Origin: Tubulanus polymorphus
Lineage: Eukaryota > Animalia > Nemertea
Assembly (NCBI RefSeq): GCF_964204645.1
Contig: NC_134035.1
Location: 9,456,451 to 9,520,450, forward strand
Direction: 5' to 3'
Length of the DNA: 64,000 bases
Shown here: in pieces, positions 30,596 to 63,203 of the stretch
Layout: every line of letters starts with the position of its first letter
Position numbering within the stretch: the first letter of the stretch is position 1
Made by a program: the position numbers and the translations under genes
Notes under the pieces: generated by a model
Databases searched by the model: none
Seen by the model: the letters and a program-made list of their open reading frames with translations, nothing else
What the model was told of the DNA's origin: nothing

Positions 30596-30667
30596 TCCCA
30601 TTTGGTCTAGTGGTTAGGATACCTGGCTCTCACCCAGGTGGCCCGGGTTCGATTCCCGGAGTGGGAA
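30596..30667 (+). tRNA. trnE-CTC: tRNA-Glu (anticodon CTC)
   Basis: Full cloverleaf: acceptor TCCCATT/AGTGGGA, D-arm TGGTCTAGTGGTTAGGAT, anticodon arm CCTGG-CTCTCAC-CCAGG, T-arm CCGGG-TTCGATT-CCCGG; T5 Pol III terminator at 30672-30676. Confidence 0.95.
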
Positions 30668-32006: not shown

Positions 32007-41995
<9,989 letters not shown>

Positions 41996-49884: not shown

Positions 49885-50036
49885 CGGTAGACTCCGCCCA
49901 AGTCGGATCCGATCAACTCGAACGTTTTTTGAAAATCTTTTTGTGACACTGTTCCTGAAATACATAATCGCCAACTCGGATATCGCTTCAAGTCGGACAC
50001 ATTTTCACGGTCCCAAAAGATCCGACTTGAGCGACT
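49885..50036. mobile_element. MITE family; second copy at ~51733-51890
   Basis: actccgccc.agtc.gatccg.tcaactc ... ggtccca.aagatccgacttgag shared by both copies. Confidence 0.65.
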
Positions 50037-50506
50037 GCATTTTACGAGACAAGAACTATAGTATAGTTACGTAGGTTGACACCACGCTTTACTGCGACAG
50101 CAATCTAGCGATACGGGTGATTATTAGATAACAGTGAATCCTTATGCCCCACGACTAACCTAATTTGCTCGCCTTATTCCCACTAACGAGGCCTGTTTCA
50201 ATTTTACAGAATCGACATTTCAAACAATTTTCTCTTCTCTCTCTCTCGACATCAGTCAACCGTTTGATGTGCCGCGCGCGCGCGCTGGTATTTTACAGCC
50301 GGTTTTGAGATGCACAAGAATCTGTTCATTATAGAATAGAAAATACGCATGTATCGTTCCATATTCACATTAGCTAAGATTGAAATTATGATAAAGATCT
50401 ATATAATTATCTAAAATATACATATACAGTCAGGGGCAGATGTAGGGAAATCGGAAGGCTGGGGAAGGGGATCCAGAAGAAAATCGAAGGTTTTTCTCGG
50501 ATAAAG

Positions 50507-50603
50507 CATCCTCGTGATCTAGGGATTCGAACCTGATGGAATCGCTACACTCAGCCACGGCAATCTCGATGCCATCGGGTTCGAATCCCTGCCGGTTGAG
50601 GAT
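50507..50603. mobile_element. internally deleted copy of the 62077-62400 MITE family
   Basis: Shares agggattcgaacctgatgg..tcgcta.actcagccacggca and the inverted end. Confidence 0.65.
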
Positions 50604-51407
50604 AAAGCAACAATGTCGAAGGCCACTAACAGGGGATGCCATCCTCGATTTTAACATGTTTCTTATAAATAGGTCCTGAAGGATGCATATTCCGATACGA
50701 TGAGCGTCAATTTGCCGGTTTCAACTATTTCTGTCTTGACGAAAAGGGCAACCTTAGTTATAGTGGGAAGGAAGGCAGGCAGGGTCCAAACTCCAGTTAC
50801 AGTCGAACTCGCCAAGTCATCAAAGCTGGGATGATCGTTACGTCGACCACAACCTTAATACATGTACATGTAAATTGAATTAGAAATTCACAGGGACTCG
50901 ATAATAGTGGTGACTTCAGTAATGTGACGACCTATAAATGTACTCATACATGTATTGTTTTCTGTTGCGAATACCATATATCAAATTCCGAAGGTCTGAT
51001 CCGCACAAATCAACTTAAGCAAACGCGAATTTATTTCTTTTTCCTAAGAAATAATTTTATTGTTTGACAGAGACATATTGAATAATTGTTTCAAACAAAC
51101 CTACGGAACATAATCTTCCCCCCGTTTTATTTCAGTTTAGAAAATTGTTGTAGAGGTTTCACTTAAACGTACCAAGCCCGCAGGGACGCAAGTCAGAGAG
51201 TTATTAACTGACGGGTGCGAAAATAAGTTTATTTTCAAACACACATGTACGACGAACTGTAAGTTAATCGTAACTATGTCTACTATACACTCTTAACTTT
51301 TAAGAAAATGTTCTCCTGATAAACCTGTAGTAGAATGAGAATAATATATCACCTGAACCGTGAAAATAAACCCATTATTTTTTATTGAGACTAGATACAA
51401 TTAATAA

Positions 51408-51627
51408 GGCTAAACAAAAATGATACCTTGTTTCTCCGCAGCGGCCGGGTCATTTTTGTAAAATATGATAAAATTTATAAACAGTTCATTTCTATAGCGG
51501 CCGGGTCTGTTATGGTGAAATTGATCACGATTTTAAAAATAGTAATGTATAGGGTAGATAGGCGGCCGGCCGGGTCAACATTTAAGCTCAGCAGAGCGGA
51601 GAAACAAGGTATCAATTTTTTTTGGCC
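51408..51627. mobile_element. PIF/Harbinger-type (Tourist-like) MITE
   Basis: TIR ggctaaacaaaaatgataccttgtttctccgc / gcggagaaacaaggtatcaattttttttggcc with TAA duplicated on both sides. Confidence 0.75.
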
Positions 51628-51913
51628 TAACATAGTAGCGTCTATATTTATTAGATAAGCTGTTTGTAAAACGAAACAGAAACAAGGATATACACATAAT
51701 GTATTTACATATAAAACCATACCCTAAAATAGTACAGTCGACTCCGCCCCAGTCAGATCCGTTCAACTCAGATATTTTGAAATATTTTTTGTAACACTAT
51801 ATGAAATGCCGCGACATCCAAGTTGTATATCGCTCAAATCGGGACACATTTTTATGGTCCCAGAAGATCCGACTTGAGTGAAGTCAAGCGTACTTTACTC
51901 GTTGTCGTTTTAA

Positions 51914-52281
51914 CAGGGTCCCTACAGATCAGTCATTCCTGGATATAAGGAGTTTTGAAGGAGAAAATTTCATATTTCAAGAAAGTGTCTGCAATACTTT
52001 CATATCCATATTACTGTAGACTCCTAAATCGGACTTAAGACTATCAAAACTTGGTTTCTAATTCAGTAACAACATGATTGGGTAAAACAAATCCCAACTG
52101 TATCGATTTAGGGGTAGTCTACTGTACAACTACAAACATTTTTAATTGCATTTCTCAAAATTGAAGGAGTGTTAAAGGAGTCTCAGGTATTTTGTTCATA
52201 TCAAAGGACTTTCAAGCAGCTTTAAAAGCATTTTCCGTTTCGAAGGGGTTTTTAAGAAACCAAGGCGTCGTAGGGACCCTG
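51914..52281. mobile_element. MITE with CAGGGTCCCTAC terminal inverted repeats
   Basis: cagggtccctac ... gtagggaccctg; no clear target duplication. Confidence 0.65.
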
Positions 52282-53232
52282 ATCAAGTAAAATCAAATGC
52301 AATAAGAAATTGCCAACTTATAACATTGCAGGCAGCCATATTGGAAAATCGTTATCAGTAACAAACTGAACCTATTTCTAAAAACATATCCTGAAAGAAT
52401 TTGTTGAACTTAAAATCGCTAAACTAAGGATTATCTTTCATCTCAATACGTACTGGGTAAACAGTAAACAAATCAAATCCAATTCTCAAAATTATAAAAT
52501 AGGAAAAATCAAGAGCATTCGGCAGCTCTGTATCGATAACAATTCGATTAGAAACGGGGCCCCCACCGAAGAATAACCACCTTGAAAAACCATTCTTAGG
52601 CCATCCCAAAATAATGGTCTGTTAACCGTAACCCGACCAACCCGACTTCAAAGGTAGCGAGTGAAAACTTTTTTTTGGGATTCATTGAAATAAATTCTAT
52701 TTTTGTGATATTGTTTCCATATAAAAATGGTAATAAATTAGTTTTTTTGCCACTAAAATTTTGCAAAAAAATATTTCTACCTACCTACCGACTCGTCCTG
52801 AAAACTTGAGTCGGTGTCTACAGCAAACAGACAATTATTTTGGGATGGTATTCTCCAAGACTAAGGGCATACGTTATTTTACGATAGATCTGAACAAAAA
52901 CTGGCAAAAATTTCAGGGAAAAATTCAAAGACTTCAATAATTTTCTTTTTGATTTCAACGCGCGAATAGATACAGTAGACTCGAACAGGGGTGAAGGAAA
53001 CATTTGTAGACGCGAAAAAATGAAATACTGTACACGTTTGTCACTACAGTGGAACCTCGTTACAGCGAACTTCACATGACCAGAAAATACCTTCGTTTTA
53101 ACCGACAGTTCAAAACAGTATGAAACTAATGAAATTTTCTTATTCTATATTTGTTATAGCCATAGAATCGTTAAATGAAGAAATCCCACACTTCGAATTT
53201 AAAATTATACGATCAAATTTATTATTATGAAA

Positions 53233-53275
53233 CCACAACGTTTCGGCTGTTGAATTAACAGCCATCATCAGGTGG
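53233..53275 (-). ncRNA. minimal type I hammerhead ribozyme motif (sense to ADAR1)
   Basis: On -: ccac-CTGATGA-t-ggctgtt-aattc-aacagcc-GAAA-c-GTT-gtgg. Confidence 0.7.
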
Positions 53276-53287
53276 AATGTAGACATT

Positions 53288-53329
53288 CCACCTGATGATG
53301 GCTGTTAGTCAACAGCCGAAACGTTGTGG
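53288..53329 (+). ncRNA. minimal type I hammerhead ribozyme motif
   Basis: ccac-CTGATGA-t-ggctgtt-agtc-aacagcc-GAAA-c-GTT-gtgg: stem I, core, stem II, GAAA and a GUU site. Confidence 0.7.
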
Positions 53330-53791
53330 TTTCATAATAATAAATTTGATCGTACAATTTTAAATTTGAAGTGTGGGATTTCTTCATTTATCTACAGTAC
53401 ACACGGATTATAGTGTTTATTCGACAACTACCATAGAATCGTTGTATCCGAGTTCGTTATAGCGATGGTTCCACTGTATATCATAAGGCTTATTATAGGC
53501 CTACGTCGTGTGCATTCATCATGTTCATATTGCCATTCTGCTTGTTAAGACCCCGCTTAAACTCGTCCAGCAAGTTTTGCCAAAGATTTACCAAAAACGT
53601 ATATAGGCCGGAGCCTACAGCGCTACATCGTCATACTGGCTACACCCCCGTTGAATGCTTTCAAGTCGAATAATCTCTGAACCTCGAACGCAAATCTCGG
53701 AACCATCGCCGAACTTGAACACAAATCACCGGTCGCGATTAATTCATGTTATGAATAGTCTACGCGTATACGACGCGAACGTATTCAACTC

Positions 53792-54023
53792 CTACGTGAA
53801 CATTTTTTCCTCGACCGGTTTCTGGACCCAGTCGCTGAGGTTGTTACGTTTGAAATGCGCGATCATGTCCGTTTTCAGTCGCTGGAAGTCGGCGGCGAGC
53901 TGTTTCGCCTGGTGGTACGTGCGTCCGTCGACCAGGTCGGGACGGTTGAACTTGCGACACACGCGCTCGAAACTCGCGTAGTAATTCATCTTCGCCAGTC
54001 TCGACACGCGACTGTCACACGAC
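53792..54023 (-). CDS. ADAR: ADAR1 terminal coding exon
   Basis: SRLAK...TYHQAKQ...[12 protein letters not shown] then stop. Confidence 0.92.
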
Positions 54024-57000
54024 CTGAAATACGAAGAAAACAAAGATACAGATATAACAGGTTACAACACTGAAATTCACTTGAGCCACAGCGAATATTT
54101 TAGTCAGCGTGATTGCAAAGGGATGCAGAAATAGATTGAAAAGTTTGATGACCAAAATGACAACCTACACTTAGTAAATTGCATTGAAAATACAATTTGG
54201 GACTCGAAATAGCGTTCAATGAGGAACGACGCTAGTTTTACTGAACACGAGTACACTTATCTGACTGTAAATATGAAGGACAGTAGACACCACTTGAAGG
54301 AGGAGTCTAAAATGATCCTAGGACAATTGCCCCCCCCCCTAAATACTTTACTTAGAAATTCATTGGTGTATTACTGAATATAGATTTATAAGATATAGAA
54401 TTACTGATGTTGTGTGAAGATCAAAACTTTAAATCAGTCCAAGAGTAATTAGCTAGAATTAGTTCACTTTGTCTAATTCATTTGAAGTAAACATCTGCGT
54501 TACTTTGAGATTAAAAAGATTTAATTTGGGGGGCAATTGTCCTAAGGGGCAATTGTCCTGATACCGTCTACAATACCACTCAATCAGATATTGCTCTCAA
54601 CTCTGACAATTTTCACGTGCTCAAAAAGATCCCGATTTGATCGCACTTACTTGTCGGTAGTCTGTCCGATAGTGCCGTCAGTCACTTCTACGTGTTTATC
54701 GCCGGCGCACCAGTTCAAACTGATGCTATTCGTTTTCTCGGTGCCTCGTTGAGGTTCGTATATCGTCACGCGTCCGAGGTGCGGATGATTCAAACGAAAC
54801 TTCGCCGGTACCGCATCGGAAAGCGGACGGTCGCCCAACGCCAGTCGACAGCACATCGCTCGAGACAAGTGTCCGTGATCGTAGAGATAACCTGCCGACA
54901 GAGAGAATGGAAACCGTTTAGATCGAGGGATGAATTCGATTGAAATAGCATTAGACTTTTACTTGATTGAAGAGAGATAGGCAAAATACTAAACAATGAA
55001 GAGGTTCTCAACCCAATGCATTCTCAACCCAATGCATACTCAACAACTTAGTACAGTAGACCCGTTTGATTCAGATAATTTTAATCCAGATTTTGATAAC
55101 TCGTACATAGATGCAGGGCTGCCAACCTCTGAAATGAACTATCAGTAACAAATTGAAATTTTTTCAGTAACGTTTCATCGAAATATGAAAGATATGTTCA
55201 AATTAATCGGTAATCAACAGTACGACCCTCAGTAAGATCTTTCATATTTCTGTATGCATCGAACAAATCAAATCAATATTCCTCACTATTGAACGAGTAA
55301 CAAATACTGAAAATCAGGAACAGTTGGCAGCTCTGTAGATGTACTTAAAATACGATGTTTAATTCGCATTTTTTCCAAAATTAGTTCTTTTGGGCCAAAG
55401 TGATCTGCCTTAAGCGGGGCCTACTGAAGACACTTTTGACCTACATAAAGAGATATGTACCAAGTAGGGAAGAGTAGACTGATATTTTCGGTACAAATTC
55501 GGAAATTTTTCTTTACCTAACGAAAGTGAGCTCAGGTATATTGGCTCTATGAATAGCGAGAGAAGCGCCCCCTGGAGGCCGAGTGTATTCCAGCGACAGA
55601 GTTTATCGCTGCACGACATCGTTCGTAATCGTTCGCCGCGTAGAATACCGTCCCACGTCTGAGGCGGTGAATCGGCTTCGATCGGAATCGTTCCTTCACC
55701 TACAAAATAAACAACATGAGTCACAAACCGGGCGGACATGACAACGGGTGAACAGAGCGGTTCAATAAATGTGCAGTGACCGAGTGGTTTTTAAGCCATC
55801 GGTCGCTGCAGTGGCGGATCTAGGAAATTTGGAAGGCCGGGATAAGAAATGAAAAGGAAGGGCATTCTGGGTCCCTACAGACTGGTGATTCCTGGATACG
55901 AGAAGTTTTCAAGGAGTTTTAAAGGTGAAAATTTCAAATTTCGAGGAAGCATCCGTATCACTTTCATATCGCAATTACAGTAGACTCCTCCGAACTGGTG
56001 ATTCCTGGATACAAGAAGTTTTTAAGGATTTTTAAAGGTGAAAATTTCAAATTTCGAGGAAGCGTCCGTATCACTTTCATATCGCAATTACAGTAGACTC
56101 CTCTGAACTGGTGATTCCTGGATACAAGAAGTTTTCAAGGAGTTTTAAAGGTGAAAATTTCAAATTTCGAGGAAGCGTCCGTATCACTTTCATATCGTAA
56201 TTACAGTAGACTCCTCCTCAATCAGACCGTCATTCGATGGTTTTGTAAGCAAAGTCTTATCCTGTACACTACCTAAGCTCGATTTCGAATTCAGTAACCA
56301 CCTAATTGGGTAAGAAAAATCCTGGCGCCAACTGTAGCTATTTAGGCATAATTTATCCATACAAACACAAACATTTCTAATAGCCTATTTCTACATAAAT
56401 GAAGGAGTTCTAAAGGAATCAAGGAGTCATGGGGACGCATTCCTCGCATAAAGCAGCCACACCGAAGGCTACTACTATCAGCATTCCACAATCGGTGTTG
56501 TGAGATATTTTTTGCGGAAATCCATCCAAAAAGACACAATATCTGAGAGGATTCATAGGTTTTAATATTAATCTCTCACATGACAAAAAGGCAACCTCGA
56601 TGAGAAGATGGGGGTCTTGATCCTCAAACCATCACCTAGATCCCACAGACTTAAACGAGAACTACGGCACTGGGTCTAAATTTACCTCCTTCGATCTTTG
56701 TACGTAGCACTCCTTGTACCGCATTTTGGAATGTCGGGTTATGGTCCTTGCGATTGTCCTCAGTTCCGGCGACTGATCCAGCTGCATCTCTATACAACAA
56801 AACAAAACCAACAACCATTAGCAGAAGAAAGGCATCTCATAACATACCGGTAAGCAACACTGAGATATGAGTACATTCGATCTTGACATCATCGGATAAG
56901 TGATTGTATTGCTTAAGTCATCTCTTTCTGTATTTCACTATTTGTATTTCAAATACATTTTGTTAGTGTAAGTCGGCATTTGGATAAGTCGTCCACATAT

Positions 57001-60000
57001 TGGGAGTTTTACGGGTCATGGCATCCAAAATGCTTTGATATTTCCTTGACCAGAAATTCTGATTGAACTCCAAGCACTCATCAGTGCGCCCTTCCTTCGC
57101 GAGAGGGGTTCTTGCGCCACTTACCACCAGCAAGGACAAGAAGGCACCAAAAATTGAAACATCCTGACAGACTAATCCCAGAATTTCGAGAAAAAAGTCA
57201 AAATTTCCTGATTTTTTCCGGGAGGGAAAAATCATCGGTAATTCTTTTATTTCCCTAGACTGTAAGACCCGCGACATAATCATTGTCCCAACTACAACGA
57301 CTTCAGTGAATATGACAGTATATGATTTGTTTACCTCGGTGAAAACAACGCTCCATCTCCGCACGGCGCTGTAGATATATACAGGTGGAAAGTAATTGCG
57401 GGTTTGATTCTGAATCGGCCGTCGCCCGTCGGTTCGATGATACAAGATTCGTCATCTTTCGATTGCGTGTTGTAGGATTCCAACTGTTTATATAGAAATC
57501 TGAAAATATAACCCGTAATCGTAAAGATATTTTCAACGGACAAGCGAACAATAGCCGCGTTCACATGGAGATGATTTGGTCCACGTGAAACTCCTCCTGA
57601 TCAGACCCGAATCAAATTTGGTCTGTGACTAATAAGAGAGAGCGTATTCACACGTAAATCCCTCACTCATTTGTAGAATGCTTTAAAAAAGATGCTGTGG
57701 CAAGTGATGTGAGTCACTTCCAGAACCAATCCGCATTCACATGCAATTATAATTTGACCTGTGCTAAAATAAGACACGGGTCTGGTCCAACGTTTTCGGC
57801 CAAACAGGCACGAACCAATCCGGTTCTAGTATGAATGGTTGGCCCAGCGGGTCACAAGACACTTGCGTAATTGTGGCTTATAATGGGAATAGTTTGGAGA
57901 CGACTGCAAGACTGATATTGATCTCAGTGTTTCAGAGTTAATGAACAAAACCAAACAATAATAATAATAAATAATAATTATTATTATTATTAGCATCACT
58001 ATTATTATTATTATTATTATTTTTATTAGCATCACTATTATCATTATTATTATTATTTTTATTAGCATCACTATTATCATTACCATTAATCTTCTTTTTT
58101 CTCTAGGGGGCCTGAACGTCCTAGCGATTGTAAAGCCTTTAAGGCTCTGTTCAGGTCCCTCATCATCAATCTACTTATTTGTTATACATTTTATTTGTAA
58201 TCATAATTGATGATGAAATAAATTACATTAAATAATAATGATTTAATTCATATAGCGTCCTATCCACTGTGAAACAATGTTCAACGGCGCTGTTAATACA
58301 TAAAGGGGTATTTTTTACAAAACCTGCAGTTGATGATTCAACAATTTATTCCCACAGTTTTGAAGATTTGAATGAACTTCATCATTTTCGTTTCTCCGAT
58401 GATGAATTTTAGTCAAAACTTCGAAACCGTCAGAAAATAAATCGTCAAAATTCGTCAACAGAGGGTTTCGTTCATTTGTTTAAATATTTCATATTCCGAC
58501 CTTAGAAAGCCTCGTCTAGTGATGATCTCGGCGTGCGAGTCGTTGACCGTGTGTCCTTCGAGACTCATCTGCGGACCGGTTATACATCGGTTACCGGTGC
58601 CCAGACAGATCACCGAACCTTCGTCGTTCGCGTCGCGTTTCATGATCAACGTCGCCAACACCTTTCGTCCGGACAGGTTTTCGGTGACGCGCGCGGCTAG
58701 CATATTCATCGCCTGGTGACTGAGCGCGGCCATACGATCGAAATGGGTCTCGGACTTGCCCAATGCTTGTAACGACGGTACATCCTAAACATAAATTTCA
58801 AATGTAGTCATTATTAAGACAGAATGCCGATCAGTGACATCTCTAATCGTCGCAAATATCTAATAACGAATCTCACAAAATATCAAGTTATATTTTTGCT
58901 TACAGGAGCGGCTTTTGATTGCGTATTATACTGTCCTTCCGACATCAACTGTCGCAACGCCGCGTCAGCCGCTTCACGTCGGCCATCTTTCTTATTACTA
59001 GCGATCAACGGAGCGAACCGCCGAGTGCCGATTGTCACCTGCATTTGGAACCTAATTGGAGATAAAATTGATAAATAATCTCTTCTAACTGCAGATTTGA
59101 ATGAATATAAATCAGGCTGGCCAGTTTCCGCCCATTTATAAATTCCCCGAGTTTTCCCTGATTTTTCCATGAGATTACACAAAATTCACTTAAGAAATTC
59201 TAATAGGTTTGAAATGTTACAATTCATCCATTCTACATTGAATAACGTACTGATAAAGAAACACGTGGTCAAGTTTACAGGTTTTTGAAAAAATCTGTAA
59301 AAAAAACCCCCGGTTTTCCCTAAATATCACCGGTTCCGTCATGATAAATAATAATTGAAGAAACACGAAGTACGAACCTCGGGTTATGCGACGGACCGGA
59401 ATGACCGATGACGCTGATATCCAGTTTCAGTCGACGCGATTGCGCGAATTCGGTTAAAGCGCTAATCGGACTCTTATTCATCAGATTGAACGTGTTCGAA
59501 TTCAACATCGCCGACGCGTTCGAACTGCCCATGTTATCGGAATTCAAACCCATCGCCGTGCTCGCGCGGAAACCTCCCGCAGACGATCCGTCGTCGCTAA
59601 CAGGCGGCGACACTCGTCGGTTCGGTGTCGGAACCGTTTGTCTAGGAAGCACGAACATACTACTCGTATTCGCCGTACTCGATGATGGACGCGAACTTGC
59701 CGACGATGTTCTCGATTTCGGCTGTAAACCGGCTAGAAATCGATTTTGATCTTCGAGCGTTTCCACGTCGTCGCGTTCGGCGGAAAACACCGAATTTCCT
59801 CGAAGCAAATCGAGAGGGCTCAGCGGAATCGTCCTGTTCGACGACGCGCTCGGTGTCTGTCCGATGGCGTCGTGAAATCGCGAGTAACCGGTCGACAGCG
59901 GCACGACGCGCGCCGACGGAGGCTTCGCGTCGGGAATCATGTCGTACGATTCGTTCTCGGGCAGACGATGCGGTTCGTTGTGTTCGGTCCGACTGAACGG

Positions 60001-63000
60001 AATCAACGACGCGTCGTACTGCGGATCGAGTTCGTCGTTTCGTTTGTAACTATTATACCGTCGTCCGCGGCCGTGACTGAGTTTCTGCCGCTGTCCGAGC
60101 AGCATATGCGGCGGCAACGGAGGCCCGTTTGCGCCACCCCGGCCACCAGGTGGAGCGCGTTCGTTTTCCGCCGCATATTTCATAATACCGCGACCGCGGC
60201 CCGGTCGCGCGATCATACGCGGTTCCGGGACGATGTCATCGGCGATCGTCGACGTACGATCGGAATCTCTCGTTAGATATCGTCCGGTGTTGTCGCGCTC
60301 GTCGGGCATGTCGAACGTCGGCGGTTTCGCTTTAATCGTTTTTTGTTCCATCGCCATCAGCACGGCGTTACCGATTATACCGCCTTTCTGCACTTTGATC
60401 ACCATTCCGTTCGACTTCTGCGCTGTTGTGTCCATCGCGCAACTTTCCGCACTCTCCTCACTAGAATTACTATTCGTTTCGACGGAACTAAGACTAATCG
60501 GCGAATGAGTCAAATTTTCCGGCTCGACTTTCACGTCGTAAGACCCATTATCTTGCGTAACATCTTCGTCCATGGCCTCCTCCGAATTCGGCTCAACTTC
60601 CATCTCATCTCTAATCGCGTTCGTCGTTTCCGGCCGAGATTCGGAAATTTCAACGCTCGACGTCGGTTCGGACAGTTCTTCTTCTTCTTGTGGAATCTTC
60701 GCCGCATCCGGGTCAATTTTCCAAAGAGGAGGCTGCTTCGAGTACTAAAATACAAAAGAATTTTCTTATTCATCATTTCTGATGAATTTTCTCAATTGGA
60801 AATTCCTTTGTGAATCGCAAATTTTTACACAAGGTTCTTACGGATCTTATATCCATGATAATTCACCAGACCCTTTTCAGTGAGAATTCCCCGATTTTCC
60901 CTACAGCAGGATAAATGAATCTGGAATTCCCTGATTTTCTTGAACTGCACCACCATGTTTTCAATCCTTCATTTTTTGTGAGATGAGACGTTGCGTAGCC
61001 TCGTCTGAAAACCGATCTAAAATTTACCTGAATAACCAACTTTTGCTTCTTCAGTTTGAAAAGTATGGGATTTATTTCTCGTTCGGATTTCTTCCCGACA
61101 CCCTGCGCGATAGTCATTGTGCGCACCGTTCGGCCGTCGGCCTCGCGCAATAGTGTCAGCACGTCGGCGGCAAGATTTTCATCAGCCAGCGACTTTCGCG
61201 GTAAGTTACACACGGGCGCTACCGAGAAATCTTCCGTGCTACTTGGAGGCAAATTCGGAAAACTGCGATGATTGTGAAATGAATTCTGAAAAAAGATTGA
61301 AGAAATTTTCAACTGTAAGCACAAATTTATCATTAAAGAAAAACCCACATTTATCAAGATAAATCAAGCGAGCCGAGTTGAGTCAAAATGTCACAACCCT
61401 CGTGGTTTTTCTTCATAATCGTGGGTTTTTCATCAATTCGATTATAGACAGTCGCTTTTCCAAGGTAAACCAAGTAAACACTTATTGAATTGATCCTTGA
61501 ATATCCAATTGATCATCATATTCAACGAAACAATCACGATTTAAACAAAACAACCAGAATTAATTCAAGTTTTACTAACAGGTTACTTGTTTCTGTCATG
61601 ACATGTATGTGTCAACTCTATTCACATCATCTGTAATCAATGTTTTCCATCGACTCATCAATTAACTCACTATAAACCCTTTCGTATTGCTATACCTGTA
61701 AAATCGGACTGATTTTTGGAGATTCTAAGCTCCCCGAAAACTGACCACTCGTATCTCTATCAGGACCTCCTCTTACACCTTCGTTCTGCCGAGGATGCGA
61801 GGGCGATTTGTGATTAGTTTCTACGGGTGAAACGGTAGCAGGAGGCTGCGCTGGTTGAGGCACCTGTACGCGGGACTCCTGTTCAATCTCGGCTTCCTCT
61901 TCCTCTAGTAGCGCGGCTATGGCTTCCGGAGTGGCGTTTGGATGGATTTTCCACGAAGGGGGAAACGTTGAGGCCTGGCGAAGAGACGAACGAATAAGAA
62001 AACAAAATAGTTTTTCGCACTACCATGGCAAACAGACGCGTAATGTGGTGATAGTGGGCTTTAGCAAGGTTTACTACATCCTCCCTCGGCAGGGATTCGA
62101 ACCTGATGGCATCGCTAAACTCAGCCACGGCATGAACCCCTGCCACAGTAGACCGGGTGCGCAGGTATGCGCAGCTTTGCCACACGAAAACTTGCGGCAC
62201 CAATCAGCTTGCTCGTTGTATAAGCGCCGAGGTAAATTTCACGGAAGAACTATAAATGGGAAATCCCGGGCTAAAATAAAATGGGATATCTGATTGGCTA
62301 ATAATGACATCATCTAAGCTGCGCGTGTAGCTGCGCACTCGGTCTAGTGTGGCAGGTTTCGTACCGTGCCATCAGGTTCTAATCCCTGCCGGGGAGGATG
62401 GGTTTACTAATGCGTTAGTTAATAATTTCTTCTAGACAATTCAGTTGAAATCAACTCAACTTTTCCAGTTAGTTTCAGTTTGATTATCAATGAAAAATCT
62501 TCCAAACACCTAACTGAAATACCGCCTTATCTGGTGTTGTAGCATGTATGATAATATACCGGTGTGTTTGGATTCCTGGGCATAAAAATTCAATTAAAAG
62601 TTGATGAAAGGATTTTAACAACCGACGTAAAACTGACCGTTACGCCATCTGGTGGTCTATGTCAATACGCTATTTAACTACTTTTTGTATTCGAAATGAT
62701 CAGGGTTCTTACTGATCAGGGAATCCAAAATCAAACCCTGATATTTCCCTGACCCGATCAAAAATTCCCCGATTAGAAACCTTGGTGGGATTCTGTTTTT
62801 TTTCTCAAGAAGTTCCTTGTGCCACACTCGACACCGGCGAAAACAAGAAACCAAATTTGTTGCATTTCCCTGATTTTCAGGAAAAGGGTAGGAATTCCTG
62901 GATTTTTCCTGATCTGTAAAGGAAACCACGAATGTCTGACCCAATTCTTTGAATATTTGAAATGACCCAACTATGCGACGTCGACGAAAATTAGTAAAGA

Positions 63001-63203
63001 ACCGAACAGAAAAATAGAAAATGCCGGAGATGACTTGAACTTACTTGGATAACGAGTTGTCGTCGCTTCAATTGGTTCAAAGTTCGATTGACCAAAGAAT
63101 GGTTCGTTTGACCGAGGGACGAGGCTATATAAGGAGTTTTATAAGGGCCTTTGCTTTTACCGAGGAATACCAAGATCTTTTCGCCCAAATCGCCGGTTCT
63201 GTC
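53792..63203 (-). CDS. ADAR: ADAR1-type double-stranded RNA-specific adenosine deaminase (5' end uncertain), at least 1139 aa; exons 63203-63045, 61974-61696, 61285-61028, 60744-59378, 59051-58904, 58784-58501, 57499-57335, 56789-56686, 55699-55517, 54891-54651, 54023-53792
   Basis: All 11 exons join with GT-AG boundaries and consistent phases (3420 nt including stop). Two Zalpha-like winged-helix domains ending PPSW/PPLW. One dsRBD ([12 protein letters not shown]...GPSHNPRF...[15 protein letters not shown]). Deaminase motifs [59 protein letters not shown]. Confidence 0.95.
54651..54891 (-). CDS. ADAR: ADAR1 deaminase exon
   Basis: [16 protein letters not shown]...FRLNHP...SLNW; phase 1-2. 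Confidence 0.92.
55517..55699 (-). CDS. ADAR: ADAR1 deaminase exon (SCSDK motif)
   Basis: EGTIP...[34 protein letters not shown]; phase 1-1. Confidence 0.95.
55881..56217. repeat. 3 x 113-bp tandem repeat inside a dispersed element, in an ADAR1 intron
   Basis: actggtgattcctggatac starts at 55881, 55994 and 56107; a single-unit relative lies at 51914-52281. Confidence 0.9.
56686..56789 (-). CDS. ADAR: ADAR1 deaminase exon (HNPTF...[10 protein letters not shown])
   Basis: gtatag| acceptor, |gtaaat donor, phase 2-1; absent from the ORF track. Confidence 0.9.
57335..57499 (-). CDS. ADAR: ADAR1 deaminase exon (PCGDG motif)
   Basis: [16 protein letters not shown]; phase 2-2. Confidence 0.95.
57955..58088. 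repeat. (TAA/TTA)n low-complexity tract with internal ~36-39-bp repeats, in an ADAR1 intron
   Basis: ttattagcatcactattat occurs three times. Confidence 0.85.
58501..58784 (-). CDS. ADAR: ADAR1 deaminase exon (HAE catalytic motif)
   Basis: GTGNRCITG...[15 protein letters not shown]; phase 0-2. Confidence 0.95.
58904..59051 (-). CDS. ADAR: ADAR1 exon, second half of dsRBD
   Basis: [35 protein letters not shown]; phase 2-0. Confidence 0.9.
59378..60744 (-). CDS. ADAR: ADAR1 large exon: Zalpha-2 wing (QPPLWKI), disordered linker, first half of dsRBD
   Basis: ttttag| acceptor in frame with ORF 59320..60603; |gttcgt donor, phase 2. Confidence 0.9.
61028..61285 (-). CDS. ADAR: ADAR1 exon, Zalpha-like domain 2 helices (...[17 protein letters not shown])
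   Basis: ttttcag| acceptor, |gtaaat donor, 258 nt, phase 0-0. Confidence 0.85.
61696..61974 (-). CDS. ADAR: ADAR1 exon, Zalpha-1 wing ([10 protein letters not shown]) plus linker
   Basis: cgccag| acceptor after a pyrimidine tract, |gtatag donor, 279 nt open frame, phase 0-0; absent from the ORF track. Confidence 0.8.
62077..62400. mobile_element. long-TIR MITE with a 9-bp target duplication (Mutator-like), in an ADAR1 intron
   Basis: catcctcc..ggcagggattcgaacctgatggca / tgccatcaggttctaatccctgccggggaggatg; ggtttacta on both flanks; deleted relative at 50507-50603. Confidence 0.8.
63045..63203 (-). CDS. ADAR: ADAR1 exon, Zalpha-like domain 1 helices ([15 protein letters not shown]...[16 protein letters not shown])
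   Basis: tttctag| acceptor, |gtaagt donor, 159 nt, phase 0-0. Confidence 0.85.

Follow-up and report, generated by a model that had tools for sequence, protein, structure and literature searches.

Introduction

Penelope-like retroelements (PLEs) carry minimal hammerhead ribozymes with a helix I of 4–5 bp and a helix II of 6–8 bp, for which self-cleavage at H17 in the dimeric form is proposed (Cervera and de la Pena 2014, PMC4209133). No cleavage of single PLE minimal hammerheads is detectable in vitro, and the dimers show little (PMC4209133). PLE insertions are characterized by 5' truncation, an adjacent inverted and 5'-truncated copy, a palindrome at the junction, a one-sided tail of 30–40 bp and short target duplications (PMC8557442, PMC3846280, PMC11167929). 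The tail is optional (PMC8557442, PMC11167929). Here we describe a 258-bp insertion downstream of an ADAR gene of the nemertean Tubulanus polymorphus. All positions refer to the window, which is the whole stretch of 64,000 nucleotides that was analysed. We consider the insertion a dead-on-arrival copy of an abundant Penelope-like retroelement and give this reading a probability of about 0.85.

The insert shares with the inverted pLTR insertions of PLEs (Arkhipova et al. 2013, PMC3846280; Craig et al. 2021, PMC8557442) the 5' truncation, the head-to-head repeats with a junction palindrome, the 30–40-bp tail at one end only and the short target duplications. However, it is an extreme case, with no ORF or internal sequence, and consists of a hairpin of ~218 nt plus the tail. 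The mini-hairpins in this genome also differ from those insertions in that they cluster in size and have their junction beside the 5' edge of the hammerhead. Animal non-LTR retrozymes are likewise short, non-coding relatives of PLE terminal repeats with type I hammerheads, but they form tandem direct repeats that give rise to circular RNAs (PMC7229834; bioRxiv 10.64898/2026.07.22.740005). The copies at the ADAR locus are an inverted pair, no tandem array is found in 50000–54000, and the identity with an animal retrozyme was rejected.

A long intramolecular duplex in a 3' UTR is a classic substrate of promiscuous editing, and mammalian ADAR2 is known to edit itself. The insert resembles the inverted-repeat substrates of ADAR in its long intramolecular pairing and its probable location in a 3' UTR. 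It also lies in the context of an ADAR gene, and self-directed editing of ADAR genes is described, as at the S>G site of insect Adar (PMC10486299). In contrast to the known auto-editing sites of ADAR genes, which are conserved and either coding or intronic, the duplex described here is a family-typical transposon insertion.

Insertion and palindrome at the ADAR locus

The ADAR exons were searched singly against Pfam. A_deamin matches lie on the minus-strand exon ORFs; the last exon matches positions 262–329 of the 329 positions of this domain (E 3.1e-11), and this final match ends at the stop codon. In RNA run X1 a spliced ADAR contig covers 53748–54021, then 54649–54889, then 55515–55697, and both introns between them are GT-AG on the minus strand. 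For the z-alpha domain there is one weak, sub-threshold Pfam match (E 0.028) in the exon ORF 60863–61357 and none in the exon ORF 62991–63188. The name 'ADAR1' used in the initial annotation is plausible for this gene.

The insertion occupies 53173–53430, which is 361–620 nt beyond the stop codon, with the palindrome 402–620 nt downstream. It sits within a MITE-like repeat and is flanked by a perfect 13-bp target duplication, CCATAGAATCGTT, identical at 53160–53172 and 53431–53443. The intact paralogue of the MITE-like repeat contains this sequence once. The alignment with the paralogue crosses the target without the 258-bp insert, so it can be used as an empty site. The initial annotation had described a near-perfect palindrome 3' of the ADAR stop, the 13-bp target duplication and a MITE host with an intact relative, and all of these were confirmed. 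An X1 joint 53162>53437 with 'ATA' between its two sides was considered as an empty allele and rejected. It differs from the expected empty-site sequence and most likely belongs to a different member of the host-repeat family, which is abundant.

The two arms of the palindrome are 96.3% alike over 108 nt, with three mismatches and one gap, mostly in loop II of the hammerhead. The outer parts (53172–53253 and 53309–53390) are 98% complementary and the inner parts (53256–53280 and 53283–53307) are 100% complementary, with a 2-nt tip between them. The predicted fold of the ADAR-strand RNA of the palindrome has an energy of -185.4 kcal/mol, compared with -57.3 ± 4.3 kcal/mol for shuffled sequences (z = -29.8). 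The features of the locus are collected in Table 1.

Table 1. Features of the ADAR-locus insertion and its surroundings (window positions)
Feature	Position	Strand	Basis or remark
Last ADAR exon, coding part	53792–54021	-	Stop codon 53792–53794; Pfam A_deamin and spliced RNA contig
Right target-site duplication copy	53431–53443		Exact repeat of 53160–53172
AATAAA	53416–53421	-	Antisense of PLE tail; first such hexamer after stop, 371 nt downstream
PLE 'tail', 40 nt, at one end only	53391–53430	+	Outside palindrome
Arm 2	53283–53390	+	PLE 3' end in element sense, antisense to ADAR
PLE-type minimal hammerhead motif	53288–53329	+	Descriptor match; predicted cleavage between 53325 and 53326
Hairpin tip, 2 nt, head-to-head junction	53281–53282		Inverted-repeat boundaries; sequence varies between copies
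Second minimal hammerhead motif	53233–53275	- (ADAR sense)	Descriptor match; predicted cleavage between 53237 and 53236
AATAAA	53218–53223	-	Inside arm 1
Arm 1	53173–53280	-	Inverted, 5'-truncated PLE 3' end; source of ADAR-sense hammerhead
Left target-site duplication copy, 13 bp	53160–53172		Exact direct repeat of 53431–53443
Host MITE-like repeat	53045–53478		12-nt terminal inverted repeats at 53045–53056 and 53467–53478
Intact paralogue of host repeat, empty site	35513–35678	-	Alignment continues through target without 258-bp insert

Hammerhead motifs

Both motifs read CCAC / CUGAUGA / U / 7-bp helix II / GAAA / CG / UU / GUGG. Loop II of the minus-strand motif (53275–53233) is AAUUC in place of AGUC. 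The hammerhead core CUGANGA ... GAAA ... UH occurs in type I order in both. Helix I has 4 bp (CCAC/GUGG), and helix II has 7 bp (GGCUGUU/AACAGCC) and is closed by G10.1-C11.1. One nucleotide is unpaired between A9 and G10.1, and the U after CUGAUGA is present in 6 of 6 aligned motifs. In GAAA-CG-UU the stretch A-C-G-U is self-complementary, which makes 15.2-16.2 palindromic (C15.2-G16.2) and leaves no stable helix III. All of this is shared with the PLE minimal hammerheads (PMC4209133), as are the location in a PLE terminal repeat or at the 3' end and the presence in one genome of several sequence families whose helices have changed compensatorily. The extra U and the short stem III, which the initial annotation counted as caveats, are not defects: an extra U after CUGAUGA and a missing helix III are the published hallmarks of PLE minimal hammerheads (PMC4209133). 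The ADAR-locus motifs differ in lying on opposite strands of a palindrome.

A structural descriptor of the motif gave four matches in the real window, none in the reversed window and none in 30 shuffles. The fetched loci contain 57 occurrences of the 42-mer of 53288–53329. Two other PLE hammerhead families in the genome keep the core, which is invariant across all three, and have both helices changed compensatorily. Among the three families 9 of 12 helix pairs are changed on both sides and 94% of the cells are paired, a count that is partly circular, since the sequences were found by a descriptor that demands pairing.

The Rfam hammerhead models expect helix III, which the PLE minimal variant does not have. 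A search with them, which had been proposed in the initial annotation, gave no match to any hammerhead model at E up to 10 in 52900–53700 or in 53278–53345. A scan of the whole window at gathering thresholds also gave no hammerhead match, and a genome-wide search with RF00163, which found nothing, is uninformative because its controls were equally silent. Matches of generic long-hairpin miRNA models in these scans were rejected; they score far below the gathering scores and are an artefact of any long hairpin.

The description of the insert as a 'double hammerhead' is correct for the DNA, which has one motif per strand, but any single transcript contains one sense motif plus its antisense. The sense dimer that has been proposed as the active form cannot arise from motifs on opposite strands. 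Self-cleavage of the hairpin transcript seems improbable, because in the predicted fold the single sense hammerhead is paired with the antisense copy in a duplex of -185 kcal/mol. We regard both as PLE-type minimal motifs by their sequence, with self-cleavage a prediction.

Parent element and family copies

Arm 2 with the tail is 97–98% identical to the 3' ends of three longer PLE copies (L031–L033). Half-copies that cover only arm 2 and the tail match the insert at 97–98% and extend upstream, with 97–99% identity, into a longer multi-copy element. The order in this parent is RT, GIY-YIG endonuclease, 3' UTR, hammerhead and tail. One copy (L054) is colinear over RT motifs (FDVASLFTNVP, YVDD), thumb, GIY-YIG, ~300 nt, hammerhead and tail. 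In L033 the GIY-YIG match lies above the Pfam cut-off (E 1.5e-5), while RVT_1 (E 1.2e-6) scores 28.8 bits, 0.8 bit under the gathering cut-off of 29.6. The same copy has the DKG motif (SDKGGKIVLMD), which is diagnostic for PLEs (PMC8557442). The parent thus has an RT, a GIY-YIG endonuclease downstream of it and the DKG motif within a single element, and tracing the insert to it supports the Penelope-type identity first suggested for the hammerheads. For the RT-EN linker a protein-atlas look-up gave no decisive name, the matches all being clusters labelled 'HTH_animal'. The parent copies seen carry frameshifts or truncations, and an intact full-length ORF was not found among them. The 40-nt tail is present in some of the parent copies and missing from others. 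Tandem and inverted arrangements occur in four further loci (L066–L069). L066 was rejected as a full parent element, being a 1455-bp tandem array with only the 3' 365 nt, and L070 was rejected because it has no long ORF.

A first look gave 775 candidates for the family of the insert, and at least 40 scored full-length copies match it with 85–94% identity. The arrangement seen in arm 1 is also present in 29 other copies. A search with exact 17-nt ends, with the inner distance covered by six gap windows, found at least 51 similar hairpins in the genome: 10 at an inner distance of 80–110, 7 at 111–128, 4 at 129–159, 23 at 160–190, 5 at 191–221 and 2 at 222–252. Reversed-pattern controls gave none. 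The target duplications of 29 hairpin copies are about 8 to 14 bp long. The family therefore shows the 5' truncation, the inverted or tandem repeats, the one-sided tail and the short, variable target duplications of PLE insertions.

The tip junctions vary among the hairpin copies, and an identical junction is found in several copies at different sites, so some hairpins may have spread as units rather than formed anew each time. The palindrome with its tail could accordingly be a non-autonomous retroelement, transcribed and copied as a whole, and we hold this possible but doubtful. Four copies (L010, L022, L027 and L029) have a common tip junction with different sites and different target duplications, a second set (L008, L011, L026 and L028) shares another junction, and the size peak at an inner distance of 160–190 is sharp (23 of 51). 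However, many other junctions are present, and the common ones hold microhomology (CATC or ATC), which makes independent recurrence possible. The subfamily substitutions are usually symmetric in both arms, as would be expected if one arm were re-synthesized on the other.

RNA evidence and the ADAR 3' end

X1 contigs 53600–53777 and 53402–53629 adjoin the spliced ADAR contig with short overlaps. The latter crosses the junction between flank and insert and ends inside the tail. Two more contigs (52355–52682 and 52055–52332) lie beyond the hairpin at similar depth (55–120). No assembled X1 contig bridges the hairpin repeat. Inclusion of the hairpin in the ADAR 3' UTR is plausible. A C>T difference at 53400 was rejected as an editing site; the base is carried by most other copies of the repeat.

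Both minus-strand AATAAA hexamers noted initially are present, at 53421–53416 and 53223–53218. The first of them might act as the polyadenylation signal: AAUAAA in the tail would end the main ADAR mRNA at ~53390–53400, the hairpin would be excluded, and a shortened 3' UTR would be the sole effect of the insertion. From the stop codon to the insert neither AATAAA nor ATTAAA occurs, the nearest further hexamers beyond the insert lie at 52146 and 51652, and the X1 3' UTR contig stops at 53402. A break at 53402 is nevertheless expected anyway, as the 31-mers from there on are common to other repeat copies. The X1 contigs over 52055–52682 have a depth of 55–120 while several intron bins have a depth of 0, which suggests read-through or a longer isoform. 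We thus see premature polyadenylation as a tentative alternative with the odds against it.

Discussion

The hairpin at the ADAR locus is an ordinary truncated, inverted insertion of an abundant PLE. We infer that it formed during integration. Target-primed reverse transcription would have been limited to the 3'-terminal ~147 nt of the element RNA, that is, the part of the 3' UTR with the hammerhead and the 40-nt tail. The integration intermediate would then have added a second, inverted copy head-to-head, a step attributed in the literature to self-priming or template switching. Such events would leave a palindrome with ~108-bp arms, a tail on one side only and a 13-bp target duplication at the flanks. 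The copy would have landed antisense in the ADAR 3' region, inside an older MITE-like repeat, with its hammerheads as passengers. At least 51 such by-products of PLE integration are dispersed through the genome, this insert among them, and its place at ADAR requires no functional explanation. From the copy number, it probably has no selected function. If the ADAR mRNA includes it, it would be a long near-perfect duplex on which ADAR or other dsRNA-binding factors could act as on any such substrate. It would not be a ribozyme there, with the sense hammerhead fully paired with its antisense copy.

The initial annotation had proposed a feedback loop, in which ADAR edits the hairpin in its own mRNA and the loosened duplex exposes or alters the hammerhead, changing mRNA stability. 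The RNA contigs do reach the tail at 53402, with transcription of similar depth past the hairpin, the duplex is long and nearly perfect, and auto-editing ADAR genes are known in insects (PMC10486299). However, the findings do not favour such a loop. Each transcript would have one sense hammerhead plus its antisense and no sense dimer in cis, which is the opposite of the required tandem sense dimer. The monomers of PLE minimal hammerheads are undetectably active in vitro and the dimers little active (PMC4209133), the insert is only one of at least 51 similar copies, and AAUAAA in the tail, upstream of the hairpin, could terminate the mRNA before the hairpin is reached. We consider this loop very improbable. 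A related case, a hairpin kept in the ADAR mRNA as a built-in long-dsRNA substrate that couples the fate of the mRNA to ADAR activity, is hardly more probable. If true, the coupling could run through nuclear retention, attack by Dicer or another dsRNA nuclease, or editing-dependent unwinding, and an ADAR1-like gene of an invertebrate would then be under an autoregulatory loop derived from a transposon.

A foldback DNA transposon or a MITE, with long inverted repeats at its termini and chance hammerhead-like words, would also be small, with near-perfect inverted arms and many copies, but the target duplication varies in length (about 8 to 14 bp) where a fixed length is expected, the termini are not symmetric, with a 40-nt tail on one side only, the tip junctions vary, and arm 2 and the tail align colinearly with the 3' terminus of an element with RT and GIY-YIG, all of which contradict this identity and make it the least credible of the explanations.

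The main value of the truncated PLE insertion is as a clean, annotated example, in which the extra U, the missing helix III, the one-sided tail and the palindrome together are the normal signature of a PLE insertion. It also illustrates that Rfam models miss the PLE minimal variants of the ribozyme. To the study of ADAR it adds a natural case open to testing, a near-perfect duplex of ~108 bp that probably lies in the 3' UTR of the very enzyme editing such duplexes. For the PLE family, dozens of copies have their junctions grouped next to the hammerhead. This clustering may point to a favoured 5' end or a switching site of the template RNA, and it bears on how PLEs integrate.

The insert and its target site

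The observation that a palindrome with hammerheads lies behind the ADAR gene is confirmed. Repeat search of the window recovers outer inverted arms with 98% complementarity and inner arms with 100%, separated by 2 bases, and the full arms are 96.3% identical over 108 nt, with differences mostly within hammerhead loop II. Beyond the palindrome, 40 nt have no partner at the opposite side. The exact 13-nt direct repeat CCATAGAATCGTT bears out the proposed target duplication. The host of the insertion is a MITE-like repeat bounded by terminal inverted repeats of 12 nt. The intact relative cited in the initial annotation (about 35513–35678) aligns through the target without the insert and so serves as an empty site. 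Palindrome, target duplication and empty site together define the inserted unit as 53173–53430, 258 bp. The ADAR-strand RNA of 53150–53450 folds into a single long hairpin of −185.4 kcal/mol, against −57.3 ± 4.3 kcal/mol for shuffled sequence (z = −29.8).

Positions of features in the window
Feature	Position	Strand	Remark
Outer inverted arms	53172–53253 / 53309–53390
Inner inverted arms	53256–53280 / 53283–53307
Unpaired tail	53391–53430
Target duplication	53160–53172 / 53431–53443
MITE-like terminal inverted repeats	53045–53056 / 53467–53478
Hammerhead	53288–53329	+	CCAC, CUGAUGA, U, GGCUGUU, AGUC, AACAGCC, GAAA, CG, UU, GUGG
Hammerhead	53275–53233	−	same, but loop II AAUUC
Hammerhead, different family	40411–40454	+	CUGAAGA core, helix II GACUAU/AUAGUC
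Hammerhead, different family	2730–2691	−	CUGAAGA core, helix II GACUAU/AUAGUC
Pfam A_deamin	58455–58763	−	ORF piece
Pfam A_deamin	57331–57564	−	ORF piece
Pfam A_deamin	55410–55739	−	ORF piece
Pfam A_deamin	53792–54043	−	ORF piece; profile positions 262–329 of 329; ends at stop codon 53792–53794
Pfam dsrm	58883–59182	−	ORF piece
Pfam dsrm	59320–60603	−	ORF pieces
Poly(A) hexamer	53421–53416	−	tail
Poly(A) hexamer	53223–53218	−	arm 1
Poly(A) hexamer	52146–52141	−
Poly(A) hexamer	51652–51647	−
tRNA gene	30596–30667	+	Rfam tRNA, 65 bits; apparently tRNA-Glu, anticodon CUC

Hammerhead motifs

Each strand of the insert carries one complete minimal type I hammerhead, as initially described. Cervera and de la Peña define the minimal hammerhead of Penelope-like elements (PLEs) by four traits, among them a helix I of 4–5 bp, a helix II of 7–8 bp with G10.1–C11.1, and an absent helix III with palindromic 15.2–16.2 (PMC4209133). 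All four are found in the insert motifs, and the extra U and short stem III, previously listed as caveats, are thus family hallmarks (PMC4209133). A structural descriptor encoding these traits matches four places in the window, the two insert motifs and those at 40411–40454 and 2730–2691; the reversed window and 30 shuffles give no match. The latter two motifs share the architecture of the insert motifs, including the extra U and GAAACGUU. Across three hammerhead sequence families the core, the extra U, G10.1–C11.1 and GAAACGU are invariant. Both helices vary compensatorily (9 of 12 pairs altered on both sides, 94% of cells paired), a count that is partly circular because the descriptor requires pairing. 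The suggested check with Rfam hammerhead models misses the motif at the insert; miRNA-family Rfam matches there are all far under gathering scores and typical of any long hairpin.

Family copies and the parent element

In a search of the 268-Mb genome with the 258 bp, scored full-length copies number at least 40, with 85–94% identity, among 775 first-look candidates. Three loci (L031, L032 and L033) match arm 2 plus tail only, at 97–98% identity. In L031 the half-copy is directly preceded by a 42-nt inverted arm fragment. L032 and L033 extend upstream into common sequence, found again in dozens of places at 97–99% identity, and walking upstream inside the fetched loci leads to a longer element. 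On one strand of locus L054 the reverse transcriptase (RT) motifs come first (FISFDVASLFTNVP before WRRYVDDILCLV), followed by a thumb or linker region, a GIY-YIG region and, after about 300 non-coding nt, the hammerhead, the repeat end and the 40-nt tail. In canonical EN+ PLEs the RT precedes a GIY-YIG endonuclease at the C-terminus (PMC8557442, PMC4209133). The corresponding L033 ORFs match RVT_1 with E = 1.2e-6, 0.8 bit short of the gathering score, and GIY-YIG with E = 1.5e-5, over the cut-off. They also carry SDKGGKIVLMD, and the DKG motif is cited as diagnostic of PLEs (PMC8557442). The earlier retroelement and hammerhead assignment is right and becomes much more specific. The parent copies seen are truncated or frameshifted. 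L066:1420–5150 consists of three tandem copies of a 1455-bp unit in which the PLE 3′ region, hammerhead included, makes up the final 365 nt. The remainder of the unit shows no relation to the PLE copies seen. This array could be a pseudo-LTR array of captured or composite origin.

Insertion signature

The insertion signature agrees point by point with published PLE behaviour. Arkhipova et al. attribute to self-priming the palindromes at the junctions of inverted PLE terminal repeats, in insertions whose tail measures 31 bp and whose target duplications span 8–10 bp (PMC3846280). For an anole PLE in vitro, the tail is tied to two alternative internal reverse-transcription start sites (PMC11167929), and parent copies here occur both with and without the tail. 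Target duplications of 29 extracted hairpin copies are about 8 to 14 bp, which favours target-primed reverse transcription over a transposase. AT or GAT ends most of these duplications in the left flanks of the 29 loci (L001–L030), abutting the element's first base, which suggests that the endonuclease has a weak preference in where it cleaves.

The hairpin tip varies among copies. Counted genome-wide by exact 17-nt ends, hairpins with inner distances of 80–110, 111–128, 129–159, 160–190, 191–221 and 222–252 nt number 10, 7, 4, 23, 5 and 2 (51 in total), against 0 in each bin for reversed-pattern controls. The PLE thus yields such hairpins recurrently, and their junction falls preferentially at the position immediately 5′ of the hammerhead. 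Certain tip junctions are common to copies at different sites, and some of the family may spread as hairpin units. At locus L056 a second PLE family likewise has its hammerhead in a head-to-head arrangement, so the hairpin habit is not confined to one family. The inverted motif at L056:1860–2030 (−), with helix II GAUCUC/GAGAUC and a spacer of about 65 nt, is from a third family of hammerheads. At G000:C4:21400999–21462198, four near-identical short hairpins of the insert's family have arms stopping exactly at GUGG after the predicted cleavage site, with about 10 nt of AT-rich filler at the tip. These ends might come from a ribozyme-cleaved template, but the four hairpins represent one event, duplicated afterwards.

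The ADAR gene and transcription around the insert

With Pfam searches run per exon ORF rather than on a joined protein, the stop codon closing the last A_deamin piece places the palindrome 402–620 nt downstream of it, as initially placed. Of the presumed Z-alpha exons, 60863–61357 (−) matches Pfam z-alpha only below cut-off (E = 0.028), and 62991–63188 (−) matches only generic winged-helix families and not Pfam z-alpha. 'ADAR1-like' is plausible but unproven.

A 2729-nt contig of run X1 maps to 53748–54021, 54649–54889 and 55515–55697; the two skipped stretches are minus-strand GT-AG introns after resolving a 2-nt alignment ambiguity. X1 depth is 0 in several intron bins covered by the DNA-like run X2; X1 must be an RNA run. 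Its contig 53402–53629 spans the flank/tail boundary 53430/53431, so the transcript includes 29 nt or more of the insert. A contig end at 53402 would be expected, since the 31-mers beyond are common to other copies. Past the hairpin, contigs 52355–52682 and 52055–52332 have depths of 55 and 120, comparable to the 54 of the exon contig, and no ORF of at least 90 aa is seen between 50001 and 53000, the nearest ending at 50000. Both AATAAA hexamers previously assigned to the insert are located, and the table lists every hexamer after the stop. Two ADAR isoforms, one stopping at the hairpin base and one reading through, are conceivable. No X1 contig bridges the hairpin, so its inclusion in ADAR mRNA is plausible but unproven. 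X1 contigs at 53600–53777 represent two haplotypes. In both runs a second haplotype at 53528–53893 carries several substitutions across the ADAR 3′ UTR and last exon, and editing calls there require matched DNA.

Expected behaviour of the RNA

With one hammerhead per strand, a single transcript contains the sense motif once, paired over about 108 bp with an exact antisense copy, which rules out the sense–sense dimer that PLE hammerheads require. In vitro, PLE minimal hammerheads cleave poorly as dimers and single motifs show no cleavage (PMC4209133). In the anole PLE, hammerhead-core mutations still allow insertion in vitro, and RNA ends at the cleavage site are not seen (PMC11167929). Given this pairing and weak cleavage, the RNA is expected to act as a long perfect duplex, not as a ribozyme. 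Editing of such a duplex would be biochemically plausible. Of the visible read differences, the C>T at 53400 reflects other repeat copies and the others are haplotypes also present in DNA. The proposed feedback regulation of ADAR is unsupported. The insert is typical of a class already known. With insertions in the hundreds, coincidence is the simplest account of its position at ADAR.
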